A DNA stretch of 64,000 bases from Oopsacas minuta (lineage: Eukaryota; Animalia; Porifera): positions 1-64,000 of the forward strand of contig JAKMXF010000301.1 of NCBI GenBank assembly GCA_024704765.1, given 5' to 3'. The notes under the pieces were generated by a model. The model had not been told where the DNA came from. It was given only the letters and a program-made list of their open reading frames with translations, and made no database searches. Each line of letters begins with the position of its first letter. Position 1 is the stretch's first letter. The position numbers were made by a program, and so were the translations under genes. Below are positions 3,577 to 48,006 of this stretch, piece by piece.

Positions 3577-6500
3577 CTAAATATGATTTAATTCCAATAT
3601 GGGTTCATAATGGTTTACCGCATGTTGTATATAATATGATCCAGCATCATTCGCTGGAGGACTACTCATTATTTCCATTAAACTAGTGCCTTTCCCAGAA
3701 TACACCATCCAACTATTTTTCATCTCTGTAGTACTTACCCAAATATCTGTGTTAAACAATAGAGCTATAGAAAATAATTCGATGTCTCCACCCCACGTTT
3801 TGTCCATATTCATATTCGACTTACTAATGTACTCTTTTGTGCTTCGATATGTAAGAGGAAATTTATTCTGTATAAACTTTAAACATATTTGACTTAGTTT
3901 CCCCACTATACTTTCTGTTATTATTTTTCGAATCATAGCGCTATGACTTGTGCTTCCTGTAACTATATATGAGAGACTTGAGAATAAACAATTCCCATCC
4001 CCGGGAATATGGAAAGTTAATGATGGTTCTAGCTCATTTAAATTGATCGCTTCCTTATTACAGCTATTCGTGCAATTTATCTTACATAATACAGGATTTG
4101 TTAAAGGTAATCCTAAAATATTACAAAGATTACCCTGACCAAGGAATTACATTTGCTTGAAGGGAGGTAATATAACATCGATCGTACCCAGTGCTACTAT
4201 ATCCAAGTCTGTTATAATCTCAATATTTTTAGCTGGGGTATTGGTTCTTCCAAAACTTCTAACGTAGCTTTTTTGGTACATCTGATTGATTTATGTTTAT
4301 TCAAAGGATTAGGTAGATGTTTTGTTTTTGCTAAATTAGAATCCTTCAATTTTTCAAATACTTTGTCCACTGTACATATTTTTGGATGAATGTAGCTATT
4401 TTTGTTTCTCTTCCTTTTCCCCAAATTTCTCTAGATTCCTCCTCCTTAGTAGCCTCTCGCAATTTTCCTTTACTTTGAATACTTTGTGACCCAATGGTTG
4501 AAATGCGAATTCAAATGAAGCCAATCTATCTCGTATGTATGTAAAAAGGCAGCGCATAAAATCACCAACTCTGATATTATTTTGGGATTTAAATATGCAG
4601 TGTTTGACTATTTTAAACCAATTCTCGACTTCTGCATTGCTATCAGTTGAAATAGCATTTATGTTTACTTTACTTAGAATGATCCCACTCCAAAGAGGAA
4701 GCAATGGCATGTAATAAGTCAAAATATATTCGAGGATTTCAGGGCAATAACACCCATTTTGATTTGGTACCAGTTGTTTTCGCTCTGGAAATTTTACAAT
4801 TGCGTTAGAGTAACATTCTTCGAAGTATCTTCCAAAGGGAGACGTTTTTCTATACGTATTACCTTCAGCATTTTCAGGGTAATCATCTATATAAAAGTTT
4901 TCTGAACACTTGCTTTCGAAATTTCCCTTTACTAATTTTTCCAAATCTACTAAACTCTTAATAACTTGAGGTAACCTCAATTCAGTAGTCAGCAAAATAC
5001 ACAATGATTCGAAAACGAGGCTTATTTCTTCAATATTGCTACTTTTCACCATAGTACCGAATGAATGCAATACTAACCGTTTTACCTTTTTGTCTAATTT
5101 ATTAATTCTATCTAATCTACAGCTAATTCGATGCAATATATGTGCCGAACAGAGATGCAAAACAGTTGGAATGTCTGATTTAGTAGTAGTTTTGTTGTTT
5201 ACAATTTCCCAACATTGAGCTAAATATAATGACATACTCAGTCTATTAAATGCCAAACATGTGCTATGCATTATCGCCCAACTATGGTCCATCTCAATAT
5301 GTTCAATTTTCAAATCCTTATGTAGAACTGCCTTACAAGTTAGTACCCATTTATTTAAAAAATGAGTTATCTCTGCCGTGCCATGGTCACTACTGATCAT
5401 TTCTGCAACAGGGACAGGGCTAGTACAGTATACAGGATGTTGCAATGTAAGAGCGTAATAGTAAATGGGTTTTTCACAAGTTGGTGGCTTTTTGATAAGG
5501 GAGCCAGTTGCATCGATATTTAGAACGATGTTGTTATGTTTGAAAGTTTAAATATTTCAATCTGTTTTTTTGTAAATAAATGAATTAGAAATGGGTCTTG
5601 TACTATATATTGTATGTAACCAGGTATTTGATCGTCTGGTAATACAGAACGGAAATGGTTCTGAGTTTCCACAATGTCTACTGCATCATCGTTGGAAAAT
5701 CTTTCCAATGACTTAACATCCGATTTAATTCTCCTTAATGTTTCTTGTGAGATTAGATTAGTGAAATTGCCTCTCTTGAATGCCTCTATATCTTTCTCAT
5801 TTCTAAATTGTTGGTGGAATATATTACTTACTGAGTTGTGAATCAATTTTGCACCTAATTCTTTCCTATTGTCAGACCTAACGTGACGTGCATGAATAGT
5901 TTTCCCATCTTGGTGTGCGAATGAAATACTACTTTCTGATTTGAAGTTCACAATTATATCATCACTAACTGATGCAGGATCATTCGTAATTGAAAAGGTA
6001 ACAAAAATGCAGTTAGGAAATTTACACACAGCAGTAGCCTGAAAGAATGGAGATTTCAAGTTATTACTATCATTTTTCTTAAACCAGTGGTGTTTAAACT
6101 TCAGTACACAAATCGGATTGATTTCAGTAAACCTTTCAGCTATGATATCAGTCCAACCTTTATTTATACGATGTGTATTATTCTCATCTATATAACTAAT
6201 AACGTGCCAAACGTCCTTTTCTAGATAAAATTCCCCTTCGTAATTGCTGTTTTCAGAAGTTTGTGTAGAAGTTGGAAAATCTGTGTGATCATCAGTATTG
6301 TATTCCATTTCCTTAGTTGTATCCAATACTTCTGAAATTTGATTTTGCGTATTTTTTTCTGACATGCTAATGCTATTGGTATAAATGAAATTCAATACTT
6401 CAATACCATTTTCTTTAAAGTCACTTTTTACCTTATCTACCCAATGAACAAAATCTGTTATCATTCCAACACTTAATAATAAATAATTTTTGTCGAATAA

Positions 6501-7503: not shown

Positions 7504-8069
7504 ACAAAATTGGCACAGGGAATGTTGGTAACACCTAAATCTAACTAGTTTGGGGTGTTAGAAATATGCTGTGACATAAACACACAATTCAAACAATTGT
7601 ATTAAGTTACATAAGGGAAGACATCTCTTGAGTGTGTATCTTACACTCACGACACAGGAAAGTCAACAAAATTATGCAAAATTTTGCCATAACAAACGTC
7701 CAATGTTCTGAAACATGTTCAGATAGTTGAAATTTTGATTTCGAAAAACATGTGAAAAAAAATAATTTTTTTGTAATGCTCAAAAAAAAATGTAAAAAAA
7801 AATTCGAAAATTCAAAATCTTTTTTAATATTCATAAACGTCCCTATGCCTTCTACTTGGTCTCCAATTTTTATCCAAATCCAACAACGAGAAGTGCATCA
7901 AATTTACAACTGAAGTGTGCTCAATAAAATCTTGCGCTAACTTCACACTCGTAATAAACTATCAAAGTACCATTTTATATGGTCGCAGTTAGATGTTAAC
8001 AAAAAGTATTGTAATTCGCTAGAAATACGTAGAAATAAATCTTCATACGTAGATACGTAGATAGCAGTC

Positions 8070-36182: not shown

Positions 36183-36472
36183 TCAAGTCTTGGAAAAAAC
36201 ATTCGAAGATTCGATCATCCGTGAAATTGAATTATAAGAATTAGAAAAAATTTCTGTTTGTTCAGCAGCATGTTCTGGATTATTTTCAAGGAGTAATTTG
36301 ATCTGTTCGTTATTATACTTTCTCTGATTCTCATTAATAGGATAGTTCAGGAGAATAAGCAGAGAGAAGCAAATCAGTATAAAAGGGACAGCTGTCATCA
36401 ATAAACGGATACTGATTTGGACAGAAGTTGATTGAGTACATTCCTTTGAATTATAATCAACCAATTCGAGAA
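36183..36472 (-). CDS. MFSD2: MFSD2-like lysophospholipid/sugar MFS transporter, terminal exon
   Basis: After a ttttag acceptor: (V)LELVDYNSKECTQSTSVQISIRLLMTAVPFILICFSLLILLNYPINE. This aligns with the MFSD2 last TM helix and the YPIxE motif, and its phase matches the donor at 47268. Confidence 0.88.
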
Positions 36473-38446
36473 CTAAAATAAATACAAATAGTTATCCAAA
36501 TGTATCACATATTTTGTTATTGAACGAGTATGAACAGAAAAGTAATGTATAAAGAAGTACAGAAAAATGGCTAAAAATAGAATCAAAATTGGGGAGCATC
36601 ATGTTGTGATAAAACATGACTTTATAAACATAAATCTATATGAAAAGTGATGTATATTGATAGGTATCACTATTTTAGACATAAAATACATAAATGATTT
36701 GTAGCCAAATTGATCAAAATAGGTTCGAACGCTTATGCGTATTCAGGACTTCAGTACTACCTGGGAAAGGTTTTGAATTGGAAAGTAAAGGATTACTTCT
36801 CTGGACCCATTAAACCAGCTGATCCCGTGACATAAGGGTAAATCATGCCAAAGTGGTCAAAAATACTTGAGATATTTAAGTTTCAAAACTGGTTAGTTTA
36901 AGTGGAGTCTCTATTAGATTTGTACTAAGCACACAAATTTAATGAATTTTCCAATCCATTCTAATTATAGTAACGCATAACATATACTGCAATATTAAGT
37001 GTTTGATATCAGTTGACTCATTATGAATCCCTCAATCAATTAGGGAATATGCAAAGTAATTTCAATTATGTCATAGCATATAGTTGGAAGTCCGACAAAA
37101 CGTTCCACGACAAAATGTTCCACGACAAAATGTTCCAGCGACAAAACGTTCCACGACAAAACGTTCCACGACATTTCGCTCCACTTTTGATTGGTCAATG
37201 TTTATTAATAATTTAACAGGTTTTAAATGGCTAAATAATTGAACTAATTTCTTGTCTGAATTCGTTTGGTTAATTCTATCTTAAATAAAATTGGTTTACC
37301 AGTTGCTGTGTAGAATTTGCTAAATAGATTAACTAAATAGCTTATATAGATTCATTTAGATTGTGGTCGAAAATATACATAGTATATTATTAGAGGATGA
37401 CATATATAATATTATGTAGTAGTTATTACAAACTGGTATAGCGTCAAGAGCAGTTGGCTAGATCTTATTGCATTTGTTTCAAACAATTTTAGCGTCCTGG
37501 CGGATTCAGTGCTAAAACCTGTTTTTCGGAGCCCGCTTATTTGTCCCGGTTGAATTCCAAATTTCCAATAGACATTAACATTAATTTATTTCAGAATTAC
37601 AGACACCCCATAATTCCGACTTCCAGCCATTTATTAGCACCAAATTATATTGATAACCCCGAAATTACGGCCATTTACCTGAATCCAAGGGTGACCGTAA
37701 TTCAGATGTTCCACTGTATATATATATGTGTGTGTGTGTTCACTTGAAATTACTTGCTTGTTGACACCTTTGGACTTTGGAGGGGTTAAGACCAGATTTA
37801 GCATGTATACTCGCAATGAGATCTAGATGTGCACGGTTATCGAAGTGCTGTGCAGCACGCCCTGTGTTGGTTTTGCCCCTTTGACTAAAAGCATTGTTTA
37901 TTGATTATATATGTATACCGCCCACCGGCACCACATACGATGCAACTAAGCTGCGTCTTGTAATGTTTGCTTTATTTATGTTCGCAATATTTTATATAAA
38001 CGAGCGAGTTTCGCTTGCGGTTTACGATCACGCTATTAGGGGGAAACCAGGCCTGACTCAGCCAATGTAGAGATGGCCAATTAGAAATGTTTTAAGTTCA
38101 TATTTCATTGCTTTTGTCGAGATTACTGAACCAAAGCTCTTTATAAATCCTAGTTTCCCAGTTTAAATATGACTACTTGTATTATTAATAAGTAACTTAC
38201 AAGAAATATAATTGAATAATTAAACATTAATCTAATAACAATAGGAAACAAAACAAAACAAATAGAAACTAAAAACTAAACTATGTTCTACTTGGGTGCA
38301 GCTACCACATCTCGACCACTGTCCACTTCAATTGGTAGCTGCACCGTCAGGAATTATTGAAATGCGGAGAGAGGTAGGAGAGAGGAGATTTAACACATTG
38401 GCATGGAGAGAGAGGGAAAGAGAAAGCAAGGGTTCATACGAAGGGA

Positions 38447-39640
38447 ATGGAGATAGTGAAGCGTACGAATGAGCATCTGCATGCACCTGATGTGCAGGCT
38501 ACGGCCTGCTGTGAGATAAAGGCCGGCATCAAGAGGAAAGCACGAGACACACAGGATAGCTCACACCAGATAATCGGTGAGAGTATGCTAACAGCATCAG
38601 AGGGTACTGCTGCTAAACTACCTAAGCTGGACAGCCTGAAGCGGACGATACAGCGTCAGCGTGCAAGTGTATTATCAGCTCCAGTGCAGCCTACCGCCCT
38701 AGCAGAGTTGGTTCTACCTGCAGAATACCAGCGGACAGCCAAGGGGGAACAGTTCCTACTCTATGACTCTGGGGAAGACGATGTACATAGATTCCTCATC
38801 TTCGGGACACAACGCAACCTCGGGATGCTACAGCAAAGCAAGATCTGGCTAGCTGATGGCACCTTCAAGACGGCGCCTCCCCTCTTCGCCCAGGTGTATG
38901 TGGTGCATGGACTCCGAGGAGGAGACGATCCTATGAAGACTGGTCATCTGTTGCCGAGTCTGTTCGTGCTGCTGCCCAACAAGACAGAGGATACCTACCG
39001 TAGGATGTGGGAGCAGATCCGCATACTCTGTCCTCTCGCCCAGCCTGAACAGATGCTCCTGGACTTTGAGAAGGGCGCAATTAACAGCTTTGAGCATGTC
39101 TGGCCTAACACAGTGGTGAAGTGCTGCTTCTTCCACCTCACACAGAATATCTGGCGCCATGTGCAGTCTGTAGGGCTGCAGTCTGACTACACACATGACG
39201 AAGAGCTGGCCATGCGCATCCGGAAGATACCAGCCCTTGCATTCGCCCGACCAGCAGACGTACCCGATCTGTTTGAGCAAGTGTCAATGGACCTCCCCCT
39301 TACGTCTGAGATAGGCGAGCTAGTCGACTACTTTGAGAGGACGTATATCGGTCGCACGCTAGCCACTGGACACCATGTAGCGGCGACGTTCCCCATTGGC
39401 CTGTGGAACTACCACTTCAGCACGCCCTTCGGACTCCCCCGTACAACCAACGCCGTAGAGGCATGGCACCGCAGCTTCAATGCCACTGTCGGCTGCCATC
39501 ACCCCACTATATGGAAGTTCCTCCTAGCCCTCAAGCGTGAGCAGGGCCTAGTGGAGGTGCGGCAGACTAACTACCTTGCTGGGAAGCCGCCAACCAAGCG
39601 GAGGAGGTCCCAACAGAGTGAACAAGCATTGAGGATCTAG
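38447..39640 (+). pseudogene. MULE transposase copy 1 (5'-truncated, degenerate 3' end)
   Basis: DDE motifs LADGTFKTAP, LLDFEKG, CCFFHL, RTTNAVEAWH. Lacks most of the N-terminal FLYWCH region. Confidence 0.92.
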
Positions 39641-39785
39641 TTGGAGAATATATCCACCAGACCATACTAAGACGAAGTTCCATACAAGTGTAGACACCAT
39701 CTCAGCCTGAGAACGGATGTTAATCTTCCGTATTATCTATCCCTCAAATAAATTTGATTTTGAGATAATACTTTAGATTAACATG

Positions 39786-41227
39786 TTAATCCGCTCCTAA
39801 ACCGAAATGATGTGCTACACCCTGCAAGAACTCCATCTTAGTACGATTTGGTGAATAATATTCTCCAACTAGAGTCCTCAATGCTTGTTCACTCTGTTGG
39901 GACCTCCTCCGCTTGGTTGGCGGCTTCCCAGCAAGGTAGTTAGTCTGCCGCACCTCCACTAGGCCCTGCTCACGCTTGAGGGCTAGGAGGAACTTCCATA
40001 TAGTGGGGTGATGGCAGCCGACAGTGGCATTGAAGCTGCGGTGCCATGCCTCTACGGCGTTGGTTGTACGGGGGAGTCCGAAGGGCATGCCGAAGTGGTA
40101 GTTCCACAGGCCAATGGGGAACGTCGCCGCTACATGGTGTCCAGTGGCTAGCGTGCGACCGATATACGTCCTCTCAAAGTAGTCGACTAGCTCGCCTATC
40201 TCAGACGTAAGGGGGAGGTCCATTGACACTTGCTCAAACAGATCGGGTACGTCTGCTGGTCGGGCGAATGCAAGGGCTGGTATCTTCCGGATGCGCATGG
40301 CCAGCTCTTCGTCATGTGTGTAGTCAGACTGCAGCCCTACAGACTGCACATGGCGCCAGATATTCTGTGTGAGGTGGAAGAAGCAGCACTTCACCACTGT
40401 GTTAGGCCAGACATGCTCAAAGCTGTTAATTGCGCCCTTCTCAAAGTCCAGGAGCATCTGTTCAGGCTGGGCGAGAGGACAGAGTATGCGGATCTGCTCC
40501 CACATCCTACGGTAGGTATCCTCTGTCTTGTTGGGCAGCAGCACGAACAGACTCGGCAACAGATGACCAGTCTTCATAGGATCGTCTCCTCCTCGGAGTC
40601 CATGCACCACATACACCTGGGCGAAGAGGGGAGGCGCCGTCTTGAAGGTGCCATCAGCTAGCCAGATCTTGCTTTGCTGTAGCATCCCGAGGTTGCGTTG
40701 TGTCCCGAAGATGAGGAATCTATGTACATCGTCTTCCCCAGAGTCATAGAGTAGGAACTGTTCCCCCTTGGCTGTCCGCTGGTATTCTGCAGGAGAACCA
40801 ACTCTGCTAGGGCGGTAGGCTGCACTGGAGCTGATAATACACTTGCACGCTGACGCTGTATCGTCCGCTTCAGGCTGTCCAGCTTAGGTAGTTTAGCAGC
40901 AGTACCCTCTGATGCTGTTAGCATACTCTCACCGATTATCTGGTGTGAGCTATCCTGTGTGTCTCGTGCTTTCCTCTTGATGCCGGCCTTTATCTCACAG
41001 CAGGCCGTAGCCTGCACATCAGGTGCATGCAGATGCTCATTCGTACGCTTCACTATTTCCATTCCCTTCGTATAAACCCTTGCTTTACACTCTCCTCTCT
41101 GCTCACACTGCCAATGTGTCATTTCTCCAACTCTCCTATGCATCAAATATACGTATCCTCCTTCTAACATCTTTTCTCCTCCCTTGTTCGTTCTGATTAG
41201 CCTGAAGGAGGGCTGACCAGGATCCAT
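39786..41227 (-). pseudogene. MULE transposase copy 2 (FLYWCH + DDE, full length, one frameshift near 40795)
   Basis: ORFs 40658-41227 and 39786-40685. FLYWCH finger GYVY...HWQCEQRGECKAR...HLH. A 1-bp deletion relative to copy 1 (ggttctcctg vs ggttctacctg). Confidence 0.92.
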
Positions 41228-41368
41228 TGATAAAATGAGATTGTTGATTAAAAGAATATAAAAATGTGTAGCAAATAATATTTAGCTGATAATACAAGCT
41301 GAAAATAATACAATTGCAACATTTAAATAGAACTACAAAGGTGACTCCATGTTTACTGGCAAACATAC

Positions 41369-41463
41369 AATTAATTTCGCATCTTCTCCATCAAAGGAAT
41401 TAATTTCGCATCTTCTCCATCAAAAGAATTAATTTCGCATCTTCTCCATCAAAAGAATTAATT
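41369..41463. repeat. 29-bp tandem repeat x3.3
   Basis: aattaatttcgcatcttctccatcaaa(a/g)g repeated head-to-tail, upstream of the MULE transposase. Confidence 0.95.
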
Positions 41464-41934
41464 ACTACGTATGTATTTCTGATATAAATTCGTTACCTTT
41501 ACTATATATCATCTTACCTCACTTTGCTAACACAGAACTTCTATGTTTAGGTTTACGATATCAATGCTGTAACATTAGATTCTTCTGAAATCATTCATCC
41601 CAAATTAATTGATTATATTTGCAATATTATTTAGCCATTTAAAACCTATTAAGTTATTAACAAACATTGACAAATCAAAAGTGGAGCGAAATGTCGTGGA
41701 ACGTTTTGTCGTGGAACATTTTGTCGTGGAACGTTTTGTCGGTATCCGCATATAGTTTTCATATATTCCAAAACAGATTAAATATAATCAATGTTTGAAT
41801 GCCGAGTATAAATGGACAATCAAATTATAAGATTATATAATCCTTGCATAGTCTTGATTTGTAGAGTTAAAAGTTGATGTATTCAGTTGTTGTGTACCTC
41901 TCAAGAAGGCAGCAGAAGTTATGAAGCTGTAAGG

Positions 41935-44464
41935 CAGGGGTCGGCAAACTCCGGCCCGCGAGGTGATTTTATCCGGCCCTCGACTTTTTCAGAAATACTT
42001 CTACTCTTCAGGGTCTTTCAATTCTAATCCAGAATTGTTTCAGAAACACTTATAATGGCCTCTACGACAATTTGGAGGCCATATTGAAGAATGGACGAAT
42101 GGAATGAGTGTGTTAGTGATGCCACACAAATGTATTCTAACACTATCAGGATTTGATCTCAGCAAAATATTGTATATAGAATTGTAGATGAATACATATA
42201 ATTCAAGTTTCAATACTCAGATCAAATTGTCAAAATCATTGTGAATTAAATAACAGCATCAACAGCTAAAAGGCGGAAAGTAGATATTGAAATCGCGTAG
42301 TTAAGGAAAGTTGGACGGAGCAGTATTTTTTTTTATCATGCAGGGAAAATTGCCCACCTGCCTTTTATGTGCTGTATCTCTTGCTGTGATAAAGGAGTTC
42401 AATTTGAAGCGACACTACGAGACGAAGCATTCGAGAAATTTCGATTTTCTTACCGGTGCTGCGCGAAGGAGTAAGATCGAATCTCTGCAAAGGTCTTTAA
42501 CTGAGCAACAGGGTAAATTCTTACAGCATACACTGCCTGGCCAAAAGTATTGGAACACTGTTTACAACTTGTGCACAAGTGGCATTAGATGATAATATGT
42601 TGAAAGATTCTATTGGATATTCCAGAAAGTAGAACAATAGCTTGTTGTCATTCGTTTTACGATATATTTATGTTCAACATTTTTTGTAATCATCCTTAGC
42701 TCATACAACTATGGTAGAATACCCTTTGTTTCAGGTATTAATTGTGGCAGGGTGTTCCAATACTTTTGGCCAGGCAGTGTACTTCTGAGTTAAAGAATAC
42801 TACACGTACAAGTATCGCTGTTAGCGAATTCATTGGGAAACACATGAAACCTTTCACTGATGGTGAATTTATGAAGCAGTGTCTCCTAACTGTGGTTGAT
42901 AATATATGTCCAGAAAAAAGGGATCTTGTTGGTAAGATTAGTCTGTCTGCAAGAACCGTTACCCGAAAATTGAAGACTTGTCTTCAAATATAAGGACAAC
43001 GTTACAAGAGTGTGCTCAACAATTTGAATTATATGCAATTGCACTTGATGAGAGCACTGATGCGACTGATATTGCTCAGTTTGCAATTTTTGTGAGAAGA
43101 ATCAATGCAACGTTTTACATTACAGAAGAATTGGCAAGTTTGGTTTGACTAAAGGATACCACTACTGGTGAGAAATATTCCAAGGAATCATGAGTGCCTG
43201 GGCTTCAATCTAAGTAATATTTGTGGGGTACAACAGATGGTCTCAAGCTATGACCCGAAAGGTGGAGGGAACAGTTTCTTTGATGGAAAAAGAAATGAGA
43301 AATGCTGGCATTGAAAGAAAACTGGTAAAAATACATTGTATAATCCATCTCGAGGCCCTGTGCGCAAAATCTCTGAAGATTCAGGTCGTAATGCGAGTAG
43401 TCATAAAAATTGTGAGCTTTATGCGTGCAAGAGGATTATATCATCGTCAATTTCAGCATATGTTAGATGAGATGGATAACCAATATGGCGATTTGTTATA
43501 TTATTGCGAAGTGCGCTGGTTAAGTAGAGGTACAATGTTGCAAAGAGTTTACCAGTTGAGAGCTGAATTGACGAATTTATTGAGGGAAAAAGGGATGGAA
43601 GTTCCAGAGCTCATTCATGCGAAATGGGTGACAGATTTTGCCTGTCTAGTGGACATCGCTAATCATCCAAATATGCTAAATTTGAAAATTCAAGGAATGA
43701 ACCAGTCCATCAATGTCCTCTATGAACAGATTTATGCATTTGAAGTTAAGTTACAACTATGGGAGCTTCAATTGAACGAGAGTAATTGCATTCATTTCCC
43801 TACACTTCGTTCACACCAAACATGTGATATTTTGTTACGTCGAATTCATATCTGATCTCATAGATCAGTTTAACACTCGATTCGCAGATATGGATAAGCA
43901 TCGTAAGTATTTTAGCTATTTCACCGCCGTATTTGATGTTGAAATATGTGACGCCCAAGAAAATTTTCAAATGGAACTGATTGAGCTCCAAAGTTCGAGT
44001 GAACTCAGATCAAGACTTCGAGATGTACCTTTACTCGAATCCTATCAACATTGTATAACTCCTCAAAGATTTCCTTCACTAGTGAAACATGCAAAGGAGG
44101 TTGCAGTTCTCTTCGGGGGTACATACGTTTGTGAACAACTCTTCTCGAAGATGAAATAAGTAAAAAGCAAGTTGCGAACACGGTTAAGCGAAAATCACCT
44201 AGACAGTGTGCTACGATTGGCAACCTCTAACCTAAAATCAAACATAGAGGCGCTATCTAAAGTAGGGCAGCATCATCCATCACATTGTCATTAATATTTT
44301 TGTATTAGTCTAAATCTAATTATTTAATACTTGTATAATAGTGGTACTTAATTAATCGATTGATTACAAAAGTCTAACGAGTTTACGATGGCATCCCATC
44401 TAGCCCGCAGTCTTATGCAATTAGTCTATTATGGCTCGTTGGCTGGAAGTTTTGCCGCCCCCTG
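41935..44464 (+). mobile_element. hAT (Charlie/GTF2IRD2-EPM2AIP1-like) element, degenerate
   Basis: Perfect 8-bp TSD ctgtaagg. TIR caggggtcggcaaact / agttttgccgcccctg. Motifs CLLC..NLKRHYETKH, KPFTDGEF, LDESTD, HCIIH, VRWLSRG, GGTYVCEQLFSKMK. Confidence 0.93.
42531..42779. mobile_element. Tc1-type MITE nested in the hAT transposase
   Basis: TA|cactgcctggccaaaagtattggaacac...gtgttccaatacttttggccaggcagtg|TA (perfect 28-bp TIR). Removing it restores the frame FLQHTSELKN. Confidence 0.95.
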
Positions 44465-44587
44465 CTGTAAGGATTCACGTATATATTCTAGGTTAGAGTA
44501 TTTATCTTCACTTGTACTATTATCAAAGTCCATTACTATTGTTCATCGATCATAGGCATAACATTATACTTCGGAGATACAGTGTTG

Positions 44588-45036
44588 CAGAGCATTAAAA
44601 GAGCGCCCTCCAATTTTGAGGAAGGGGCCTGGAGCGCTCCATTTATGATTCAGGAGAGGAAGGTGGAAGAGTGCTCTATTTTTGGAGGGGCGCGCTCCTA
44701 TAAAATTGTAACAATATTCTGCATAATATTCAGTATTCTTGGTATAAAAAGTGGATCCTGGGACACTTTTGTATAAATCACAATTTATTGGAATGGTTTG
44801 ACGTTACATATTTAGCAATTTCCCGGATGTACAATGGTTAAATAAATTATAAAATCTCAAATTCAATCCTAATTACTTAAAATATAATCTCAGGAAATTC
44901 CAAAAGAATGAAAAGGAGAGCAATTGGAGCCGGAGCGGAGTGCAGTCCATTTCTAAGTAAGGGTTGGAAGTGGGGGCGAGCTCCCTTTTTCAGGGCAAAA
45001 GCGCGCTCCAAAAAATTAGGAGCGCTTAATGCTCTG
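44588..45036. mobile_element. hAT-type MITE
   Basis: TIR cagagcattaa / ttaatgctctg. 8-bp TSD cagtgttg/ctgtgttg (7/8). Repeated ggagcgc motifs. Confidence 0.82.
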
Positions 45037-46638
45037 CTGTGTTGTTAGTACTTTCCACCTATATGGGTCAGAGGTGGGGATTTGATACGAAAATTTTCAA
45101 ATTTCCCACCCTTAGCCCATTTCAAATTTCAATACCCTGTCTTATCTCTTATGTAGGTTACTAGGGACAAATAATCTTTAATTATGTAATGTTATAAAAT
45201 TAGATATCAAATGCTCGCACAATTTGGGGTCAATTCCCTTAAATCCTCAGTAATTACAAGGACCCGATTGGGAGAACTGTAGACAACCATCGATAGGTGC
45301 ATGAGTAAGATAATAGCGGAAATATAGAAATAGCAGCGAAAGAAACAAATAACTTATATATAGCTATATTAAGTACAGATTTTTTGTATTAGTTTCTTTA
45401 TCATCAAGGAGGTTATTTTTCGGATTGATGAAAGTCACCATTTCGAATGAGGGCACAATGCTTTTGTATTATTACGAAAAATTGTAGTATAGCTAAGCTC
45501 AATATAAGGAATCAGATTAGAAATAGCTACAAGAGGGGTAGGACAGCTGGAGTACGCCTGAAACTACTTAATTAATATATTTAAGTAGACTAAGGCCTCA
45601 AATTAACTGAGTGTCAATAGAGATTTACACAGGTGTAAGGTTTTTAAGGAACTTTTGGTGCTGTCCGTTTTAGCACTCTATATTAAGTGACATTTTAATC
45701 AGACCAGTTCATTAGGGCAGCTACTACCTAACTGGCCTCTTCAAATCCGTTCCTCCAGGTCTGATAGTGTTGCTTTTAAGTTATGAATACATGCAAGTGG
45801 GCATCATATATAAACATTGGCACTCACTTTTAGCAAGCAGAATCAAACCTGGGAGGTTACCATACGAAAATGCTGCTACTTCTATGTAAATTGACATGAA
45901 TATAGTCTCTACCTCAAAGCCTAGGGAATCCAGAGACTTCAGAACTCCTTGAGGTGCCCAAACTAGACGCCTATGTTAACATAAGTAGACTCCGCTTAAT
46001 AGGATCACATTGGTACCAGTCCATTTTGACACAATTAAGCGGAATAAAGGTGTTGGCTCGATTAACCGGAGTTATTAACAATATTTGTATGGTTCTGTTT
46101 CTGGCCAAGTGAGTCTATTTAGGGATGGCTCTATTAAGCGCAGTCTACTGTGGTTCTACTGTAGTTTACTGCGGTTCTTATAACCAAAATACAATCACCA
46201 CAAATCTCAAGTGAAAATTTCCTACAAAGCTTTCAATCGACGCTATAACTCACAATCAACGATTTAGTTGTAATTTGTGAGATTGTGGACATGGAGAAGC
46301 GATTTACACGGTATGAAATCTATAGATGGCTGGTGGAGACTGATGAATCGATTCCTCGCTCGAATAATACACGAACATTGTGTGAATTAATATTCCATTT
46401 CAAATAAATAGATTTTTGTTACTAAGAAACCAGGAGAGCCAAAATAGGGTCGGTAGGATTGGTTTTAACCCATCCTTATATTCATAGGGTTGGCTTTACC
46501 CACTCTGATTTGTTCATTGCCGAGATAAATATTGGTTGTCACTTGTCAATTACCCTACTTGCATTTATCATCAGACATGTGTTTCTAAATGTAATTGTTA
46601 TATTTTTATTAGCATTATCTATTGAGGTCATGTGACAA

Positions 46639-46900
46639 GTGTTATGGAATATAGCTAGAGCACTACTATTAAAGGATTACAATGTGGCATGGTGTCCTCA
46701 GATATCTATTTTACTCCGAATCCTATTAACATTGCTGGTAACATTAGTTGAATGTGAGCGGAATTTTTCTGCCTTAAATACACTAGAATCAGTTTTGAGG
46801 ATAACAGTAGGTCACGACTGAATGCGTGCCGTTATGATCGGTCATATTCATGAAGAAATTCTTAATGAAATATTTCAACGAAGAAATTCAATAACGGAAA
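46639..46900 (+). pseudogene. hAT C-terminal dimerisation domain fragment
   Basis: PQISILLRILLTLLVTLVECERNFSAL...LRITVGHD*...GHIH. Confidence 0.75.
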
Positions 46901-47268
46901 TAAGCGGAGGGAATTAACTTTCGTATCTGAAATTATGACTATGAAAATTTTTGGATATAATATTGATGGTTCAATAATACAGTAAGATCACATATCTACT
47001 AAATACAGAACATATCAAGGAATTATCCAGAAGCACTGGACGCTCCTCTAGGCTTATGATCTTTGAAGATAACATATTAATGACCGTAAAAATAGATGGT
47101 ATTTCCCCAATACCGACACAAATTTACTGATTTACGTATTAAATTTTACAGGTGGAATGCTAGGAGCGTACTCCCAATAACCTGTTTAACTCCGTGCATC
47201 ATGCATAGTATACTTCATGAATCATTAAAAAATATAATTAGGCGCATCGTTGCAAATTGAAACATTAC

Positions 47269-48006
47269 CTAAAGTAGATACACCCAATGCCATTCCAGAA
47301 CCAAATTTGCTAAAAAAAACAAAGAAGCCAAAAAAGATCTCTTCCATTCTTATACCCATAGATAAAAATGCAGAATCTACAACATCAGGAAGCATAGACC
47401 AAGGAACAAGATAGAAGGTTGAAACACCAGTACCCGCAATGAAAGATATGATATAATTAAATACAATAGTATGATGATCAAGAAATAACAAAATTAAGAG
47501 AGAGATTAAGACAATGGCAGATCCAAGGATTAAAGTTAATTTTTTGCTAGTTTTGAACATAAATATTTGCCATGGTAACATGGAGAAAATCATAGAGATA
47601 ACCAACAACAACAACATAAAGAAATAATCATCCTCCATTTTTAGCACGTGTTTGGAAAATAATGCAAAATTGCCTTGTAAAATTTGTACAGAAAGCCAAC
47701 TAAACATATAAATTCCAAGTAAATACAAGTAGGGCTTGTAGGTCAACGCATTATAAACCTGAAGCGGGTGGAATCTCTTTTTCGATTTAGAATTTACATT
47801 TCTTAACGGAGCAATAGGAATAATTTCTTTAGTACCAAAAAGCATGATCAAACAAGTAGAGAAAATAAGTATTGAGGTAATAACTGAACTCCAGAAATAT
47901 CCAGAATTTTCAGTAAAACCAGTTGTATTAGAGGGCATTGAATCCATTCCGCAAGTTTCAACCTTACTCTGAGAAAGAGATAAAAATATAGTATGAATTC
48001 CAACAC
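47269..48006 (-). CDS. MFSD2: MFSD2-like MFS transporter, central exon
   Basis: YKPYLYLL, QGNFALF, LVPWSMLPDVVD, EEIFFGFFVFFSKFGSGMALGVSTL, then a phase-1 GT donor (G|gtaatg at 47268). The frame is open upstream of the listed ATG to about 48006, and the exact 5' boundary is uncertain. Confidence 0.88.

Follow-up and report, generated by a model that had tools for sequence, protein, structure and literature searches.

The stretch of DNA studied here, referred to as the window, consists of 64,000 nucleotides from the glass sponge Oopsacas minuta (assembly GCA_024704765.1, contig JAKMXF010000301.1, positions 1 to 64,000). At positions 37086-41747 it possesses a Mutator-like element (MULE) with terminal inverted repeats (TIRs) of about 150 bp, a target site duplication (TSD) of 9-10 bp and two convergent transposase copies, termed arm A (plus strand) and arm B (minus strand), which together form a palindrome. 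The element lies in an intron of a transporter gene and was compared with further copies of its family. Those from the same assembly were reached via annotated proteins and are numbered L001-L005, L010 and L011, with an additional pair in L002, while L008 (ENA ERZ25766962) as well as L006 and L009 (ENA ERZ25072740) come from other assemblies. Nine complete palindromes were compared, L008 included. The features of the window copy and of the intron around it are as follows, with ORF standing for open reading frame:

36473..47268, minus strand: host intron of an MFS_2-family transporter gene (GT..AG, 10,796 bp; exons end at 47269 and start at 36472)
37076..37085: left TSD, 9 bp (CATATAGTT) with a matching G before it; the 9-bp TSDs of other copies differ
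37086..37239: left TIR, composed of 15-bp tandem subrepeats (CGACAAAAYGTTCCA)
37240..38294: left internal non-coding region with no ORF of at least 70 amino acids; common to L001, L003, L005 and part of L004, not in the other-assembly copy
38295..38345, plus strand: conserved stem-loop at the outer end of arm A, with a 12-13-bp stem and a 26-27-nt loop
38346..38452, plus strand: outer edge of arm A, GA-rich and diverged (from 38375 on about 80% identical to arm B)
38453..39635, plus strand: core of arm A, a 5′-truncated transposase copy (ORF 38447-39640, 397 amino acids, MULE domain)
39636..39785: A-type inner edge and centre, with the arm A stop codon at 39638-39640 and the only plus-strand AATAAA of the centre at 39747; inverted in L004
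39786..39874, minus strand: B-type inner edge and 3′ end of the arm B ORF, stop codon at 39786-39788
39875..41056, minus strand: core of arm B, a transposase copy whose frame is broken by a 1-bp deletion at codon 145, between 40793 and 40794
41057..41227, minus strand: 5′ coding part unique to arm B, with the start codon and the N-terminal half of the FLYWCH finger
41228..41625, minus strand: non-coding 5′ region of the element, in which a 29-bp unit is repeated three times in tandem (41369-41463)
41626..41747: right TIR, identified by repeat finding
41748..41757: right TSD, matching the left flank

Repeat finding places the inverted arms at 38409-39635 and 39875-41100, in two pieces (38717-39635 / 39875-40793 and 38409-38715 / 40794-41100). 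When arm A is compared base by base with the reverse complement of arm B over the 1183-bp core (38453-39635 against 39875-41056), just two substitutions (39419/40091 and 39423/40087) and one 1-bp indel (38716, against 40793/94) are found, exactly the count given in a preliminary description of this locus. Likeness between the arms extends past the core, outward to 38375/41138 with about 80% identity and inward to 39723/39786 with about 70-75%. The two TIRs (37092-37239 and 41626-41742 according to the repeat finder) are 94-95% alike, in contrast with the near-identical arms. The flanking duplication is GCATATAGTT (37076-85 and 41748-57), of which 9 bp, CATATAGTT, are the TSD by the rule of the family, a length inside the 8-11 bp that define MULE duplications. 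Both arms possess the MULE domain (PF10551, E ~1e-10, over the curated cut-off of Pfam) and the minus-strand copy alone has the FLYWCH domain (PF04500, 40658-41227). Repeat finding, flanks and Pfam domains thus agree with the preliminary description of a MULE bounded by TIRs and a TSD and holding two convergent transposase copies. The description was also right that neither copy is intact, as arm A is without the first ~40 codons of the transposase and arm B is frameshifted, having lost one A at codon 145; this base is kept by every other copy and the site is not a homopolymer.

The transposase is 38-44% identical to insect and other FLYWCH-MULE proteins, and the combination of FLYWCH and MULE domains marks the element as Phantom-like and as a putative member of the Phantom clade. 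Like the Phantom, Muta and Tm1 elements, of which the single-gene L006 is a close likeness, it combines a FLYWCH-MULE transposase of about 480 amino acids with a 9-bp TSD and long TIRs of short tandem subrepeats, and Tm1 additionally has Foldback-like composite TIRs (PMC3169594, PMC6446971). Unlike the O. minuta element, none of these is mentioned in the published descriptions found as having an internal palindromic duplicate of the transposase. Porifera are not among their listed hosts (PMC6446971).

The arm A ORF shows 86-98% identity to NCBI proteins named Oopsacas minuta, and a convergent pair of MULE genes with a self-complementary block of 2.7-2.8 kb was present at every O. minuta locus fetched. 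The palindromic layout was seen in 9/9 O. minuta loci examined, the window copy counted, and also in L008. L001 matches the window element (37101-41717) with 96% identity over its whole length while the flanks are unrelated, and L003 likewise matches the whole window element. Four palindromic copies possess 9-bp TSDs of their own, namely those in the window (CATATAGTT), L002 (CTGTACAAT), L003 (CTTATGTAT) and L010 (CTTTTCTAC), and since these differ the palindrome has moved as part of the element. The public reads were used in the form of short Logan contigs of four runs; the depth of the element in these is far above that of its flanks, from which the family is taken to be multi-copy, with the caveat that depth is not copy number and that the flank-to-arm ratio varies about sevenfold between runs of one sample. 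The ordinary single-gene form is illustrated by L006, a compact relative which is 2.0 kb in length and has one FLYWCH-MULE gene of 482 amino acids, 196-bp TIRs with the same kind of subrepeat and a 9-bp TSD. In the case of L009 (6016-6341) the end of an 805-kb contig falls inside the second arm of such a palindrome, and it may be that the palindrome breaks long-read assemblies at contig ends of this kind. L005 (JAKMXF010000328.1, 7382-7396) has lost its centre together with about 190 bp of the 3′ end of one arm, an asymmetric central deletion of the kind expected from palindrome instability.

Just outside arm A lies a 51-nt stem-loop, with stem halves GGTGCAGCTACC and GGTAGCTGCACC, followed by a GA-rich tract. 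It sits at the identical junction in all nine complete palindromes, L008 included (window 38295-38345, L001 5848-5898, L002 5947-5997, L004 5705-5755, L005 8639-8689, L008 4882-4931 and L011 7697-7747, with variants in L003 at 5849-5899 and L010 at 7944-7994), and its loop carries a conserved CCACTGT core. The L003 variant has one compensatory pair change and one mismatch, that of L010 two mismatches. The predicted fold has an energy of -27 kcal/mol (z -4.6), and 46/51 of its positions are kept between L008 and the window, where the coding arms are 72% identical. The single-gene copies L006 and L007 have no counterpart of it. An Rfam scan of 37000-41800 at E <= 1 gave no match, and a scan of JGI metagenomes with both stem halves yielded seven perfect palindromes, all unrelated and none close to a MULE. 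The window, L001, L003 and L004 have their A-type and B-type inner edges in common, and whole elements are colinear across the junctions. It is not credible that nine duplications arose independently at identical breakpoints, which argues for one origin of the duplication.

Despite this shared ancestry, an arm resembles its partner at the same locus far more closely than it does the arms of other loci. Over the core, arm-to-arm identity within a locus is 99.0-100%, as against 85-98.7% between O. minuta loci, and for the arms overall the values are 98.2-100% within and 65-99% between loci. In a maximum-likelihood tree the two arms are sisters in 9/9 loci, eight of the pairs with 97-100% bootstrap and the ninth, L001, with identical rows. 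The arms of L008, a copy from a different assembler with a 1.8-kb spacer, differ by a synonymous divergence (dS) of 0.015, compared to a dS of 1.6 between L008 and L001. Disabling lesions are also found in both arms of a locus, these being a 1-bp deletion at codon 193 in L003, four frameshifts in L004, and an 8-bp deletion, a 1-bp deletion and a stop codon in L005. The window arms share private differences from the family consensus at the mirrored sites 39508/40002 and 38582/40927 and are therefore each other's closest kin. The centre of L004 is 89% identical to that of the window when reversed and 74% when read forward, and its A-type and B-type edges are swapped, a flip that a crossover between the arms would yield. 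The assembler could have erased small differences between arms, but the window, L002, L003 and L005 still have them, and L008 shows the same pattern independently. These features have the signature of arm-to-arm gene conversion with occasional crossover, which operates in live and dead copies alike.

The inner edges themselves show a peculiarity. In a pairwise alignment of 39636-39723 with 39786-39874, 15 of the 17 mismatches are transitions of one strand sense, appearing as G.U pairs when the RNA is that of the minus strand and as A.C mismatches when it is that of the plus strand. Recent hypermutation or editing was considered and dropped, the edge types being old, present in four loci and swapped in L004, and the counts being dependent on the alignment. 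No simple explanation fits this mismatch pattern of the A-type and B-type edges.

Arm B of L001 has an uninterrupted ORF of 480 amino acids with both domains (482 in L006). Between palindromic lineages, the ratio of nonsynonymous to synonymous divergence (dN/dS) lies at 0.24-0.6 for pairs from O. minuta and at 0.15-0.17 for comparisons with L008. Judging by these values, the palindromic lineage has evolved under purifying selection, with a layout that has long been compatible with a functional transposase.

With regard to its surroundings, the element is found in the last intron of an MFSD2-like gene, a location claimed in the preliminary description and borne out here. The intron runs on the minus strand from a GT donor (GTAATG) at 47268 to the end of a pyrimidine-rich AG acceptor at 36473, the exons join in frame, and the flanking minus-strand ORFs match the Pfam MFS_2 profile at positions 166-379 (ORF 47225-47947) and 384-427 (ORF 36183-36464). 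As arm B has the orientation of the host gene's sense and the element is inside the intron, the host pre-mRNA would contain the stem. When 38375-41138 is folded as RNA, the plus strand has 1332 inter-arm pairs (-2858 kcal/mol) and the minus strand 1352 (-2917 kcal/mol), from which a double-stranded RNA of 1.2 kb is predicted in the event of transcription. By the same prediction the minus-strand hairpin is 59 kcal/mol more stable than that of the plus strand. Piwi and Argonaute genes have been reported in glass sponges, an O. minuta transcriptome included (PMC5381599).

The same host intron holds a hAT/ZBED-like remnant (42311-44159, plus strand) with broken ORFs and a match to a Spin-doc-type zinc finger, and within this stretch there is also a pair of 30-bp inverted repeats (42529-42558 and 42752-42781). 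In the Logan contigs the flanks adjoining the MULE (36881-37085 and 41748-41948) are about 20x deeper than the sequence further out, and some contigs fuse the left and right flanks directly, with joints of 37035/37065/37085 to 41748/41753/41831. The MULE is therefore nested in another repeat family which has empty copies.

Two further details of the element were observed. The TIR subrepeats occur in two flavours, CGACAAAAYGTTCCA in the window (37092-37184, 41681-41742) and L003, and CGACATTTCGTTCCA in L001 (4603-4740), with a similar form in L006 (5690-5810), while the innermost subrepeat retains the ATTTCG form in all copies. This may represent a change of transposase binding sites inside one family. 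There is also a small inverted repeat, CTGATCAGCC .. GGCTGATCAG, right after the ATG of the full transposase (window ~41185-41215, minus strand). It is also present in L001, L002, L007 and L008 and is conserved across these diverged copies, synonymous positions included, and could be a translational or DNA-level signal.

The window copy is best read as a dead copy belonging to a MULE family of O. minuta that is old, mobile and palindromic and whose arms are homogenised by gene conversion, a reading to which we give a probability of roughly 0.8. An inverted, 5′-truncated duplicate of the transposase (arm A) arose once, in an ancestor of the family, beside the full gene (arm B), and the palindrome was then carried along with every transposition. 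Intramolecular gene conversion keeps the arms near-identical, with an occasional crossover flipping the centre, and persists in dead copies, spreading frameshifts to both arms. The 1-bp deletion in arm B of the window copy is recent and still unconverted. A transcript crossing both arms, either the host pre-mRNA or the element's own arm-B transcript, is expected to fold into a duplex of about 1.2 kb (some 1,350 pairs for the whole palindrome), which would suit the small-RNA machinery of the sponge as a substrate.

A number of points weigh against this reading. Single-gene L007 nests within the palindromic clade of the tree, where the loss of an arm, host-to-host transfer or more than one origin are all possible. 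L001 has no recognisable TSD. No Logan contig of the four runs spans the palindrome and the private letters of the window locus are absent from them. In addition, the O. minuta genome, 15% of which consists of DNA transposons, was assembled with SPAdes from Illumina and PacBio reads combined (PMC10280926), and hybrid graph assembly of this kind could over-homogenise near-identical arms.

The palindrome may otherwise be an adaptation of the transposon itself, serving as a template for conversion repair, as a source of hairpin or antisense RNA that limits copy number, or through a truncated arm A product acting as a regulator like the inhibitor of Tn5. The latter protein is an N-terminally truncated transposase which regulates the full one. 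The persistence of the layout over dS > 1 speaks for such a role, as does the conservation of the junction stem-loop (46/51), which is better than that of the coding sequence (72%). It is also worth mentioning that the arm A ORF is open wherever arm B is open. However, lesions that disable the gene are likewise copied by conversion into both arms, which is how a passive process would behave, and the arm-to-arm dN/dS of L008 is ~1.1. A separate protein-coding gene in arm A was considered and rejected, since the arm lacks a start and a C-terminus that are both its own and conserved. The ORF begins at an internal methionine of the full transposase, the window and L001 carry a frameshift in its 3′ end, and the N-terminal extensions given in the annotation vary from locus to locus. 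With regard to a self-made transcript, the sense strand of arm B has zero AATAAA/ATTAAA hexamers across the palindrome in seven O. minuta loci, the first of these lying 160-440 nt past arm A, and the sense strand of arm A has one AATAAA in the centre in the window (39747), L001 and L003. This absence of canonical poly(A) hexamers would favour transcription through both arms, but it is within chance (an estimated ~0.7 per palindrome) and is a lead, not evidence. Taken together, an adaptive role of this kind is possible but doubtful.

The preliminary description went further and proposed that the intronic copy is a host-driven silencing locus resembling maize Mu killer (Muk), where dicing of the hairpin in the MFS pre-mRNA would yield small RNAs that act in trans to silence the MULE family. 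Muk itself is one single locus, derived by rearrangement; its duplication takes in the TIRA region, and it shuts the MuDR family down (PMC3440606). The two are alike in possessing an inverted duplication of part of a Mutator transposase gene, from which a long hairpin RNA is expected upon read-through from a neighbouring gene (PMC3440606). The element also lies in a GT..AG intron on the host's sense strand, its stem is near-perfect over 1.2 kb, the window copy is dead and would contribute no transposase, and Piwi and Argonaute genes have been reported from glass sponges (PMC5381599). Nevertheless, the proposal is not supported as stated, since the layout is family-wide, mobile and found together with an uninterrupted ORF of 480 amino acids. 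The hairpin is present in every copy of the family examined, those with uninterrupted ORFs included, and is not peculiar to this locus. The resemblance to Muk fails on two defining points, namely its uniqueness and the inclusion of the TIR and 5′ region in its duplication (PMC3440606), as the O. minuta duplication is internal (ORF codons ~40-450), tail-to-tail and inside the element's own TIRs and TSD. The main reason for the misfit is that the layout, which is old and found in every copy examined, has long been compatible with an intact transposase. Since the family has multiplied under purifying selection while palindromic, and has not been killed by its layout, hairpin RNA can at most damp it and not kill it as Mu killer does MuDR. 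Silencing and small RNAs have been shown for Muk and are putative for the O. minuta element. A host-made silencer at this locus is accordingly judged unlikely.

An assembly artefact, be it a fold-back that produced the palindrome or a graph collapse or polishing that made the arms near-identical, is very improbable. The hybrid SPAdes assembly with Illumina polishing (PMC10280926) and the lack of a public contig spanning the structure would allow for it. However, the palindrome is internal to an element with differing unique sides, intact TIRs and a TSD, its edges have diverged asymmetrically and its centre is asymmetric. Furthermore, nine loci, each with substitutions of its own, show the same layout and junction motif, as do ENA assemblies of another pipeline, and in the run of a second organism there is a contig with 96% identity across the arm A junction. 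Independent formation at each locus, by fold-back repair at a hotspot and with neither a single origin nor conversion, would likewise make the arms always closest relatives if the separate duplications were recent, but is barely tenable, as the outer junction (the 51-nt stem-loop and a GA-rich tract not in arm B) is the same in nine loci, the A-type and B-type inner edges are common to the window, L001, L003 and L004, and whole elements are colinear through the junctions.

Gene conversion between arms is a known property of the palindromes of the human Y chromosome. The conversion-homogenised MULE family resembles sex-chromosome palindromes such as those of willow in that the arms are more similar than the age of the duplication allows, conversion spreads changes between them and the spacer inverts (PMC7023750). 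Those palindromes, however, are fixed, measure tens of kb to Mb and contain host genes, whereas the O. minuta palindrome is 2.8 kb and lies within a multiplying transposon. The inverted duplications generated by alternative transposition of maize Ac/Ds (bioRxiv 10.1101/2020.01.07.897926) also place a transposon's own sequence in inverted orientation and provide a possible route to double-stranded RNA, but these are new, local and immediately silencing via small interfering RNA, in contrast to the inherited and long-lived O. minuta layout. Foldback (FB) elements have large inverted repeats and TIRs of subrepeats, and their transposases group with Mutator (PMC3169594). In FB the long inverted repeats are the termini, whereas the O. 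minuta element has ordinary termini and it is the gene itself that is inverted and repeated. Literature searches brought up no earlier case of an autonomous transposon with a conserved palindrome of its own gene, nor one of conversion between copies of a transposase.

A functional, multiplying lineage with a 2.8-kb palindrome of its own gene is unexpected, given that palindromes which are long and perfect tend to be unstable and that silencing is the usual consequence of long hairpin RNAs. The palindrome could serve the element, through conversion repair, self-made hairpin RNA or a role linked to the stem-loop, or it could be simply tolerated. A speculative version of the former, and one held here to be rather improbable, is that the mirrored gene pair is a selected transposon design, kept across sponge lineages beyond synonymous saturation, with the stem-loop marking the edge of the duplicate. 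If so, the element would possess either a self-templated copy for the repair of its transposase or a built-in hairpin RNA that tunes its activity via the small-RNA pathway of the host, and would be the first autonomous DNA transposon known with such a module. The window locus itself is one dead member among many and no special host-made silencer. Each copy of the family is an independent replicate, and together they offer a natural experiment on conversion rates, tract limits, direction and spacer flipping, questions for which a few palindromes of sex chromosomes otherwise provide the material. Should a small-RNA pathway indeed be fed by the arms, the family would illustrate the coexistence of a transposon and RNA silencing in an early-branching animal.

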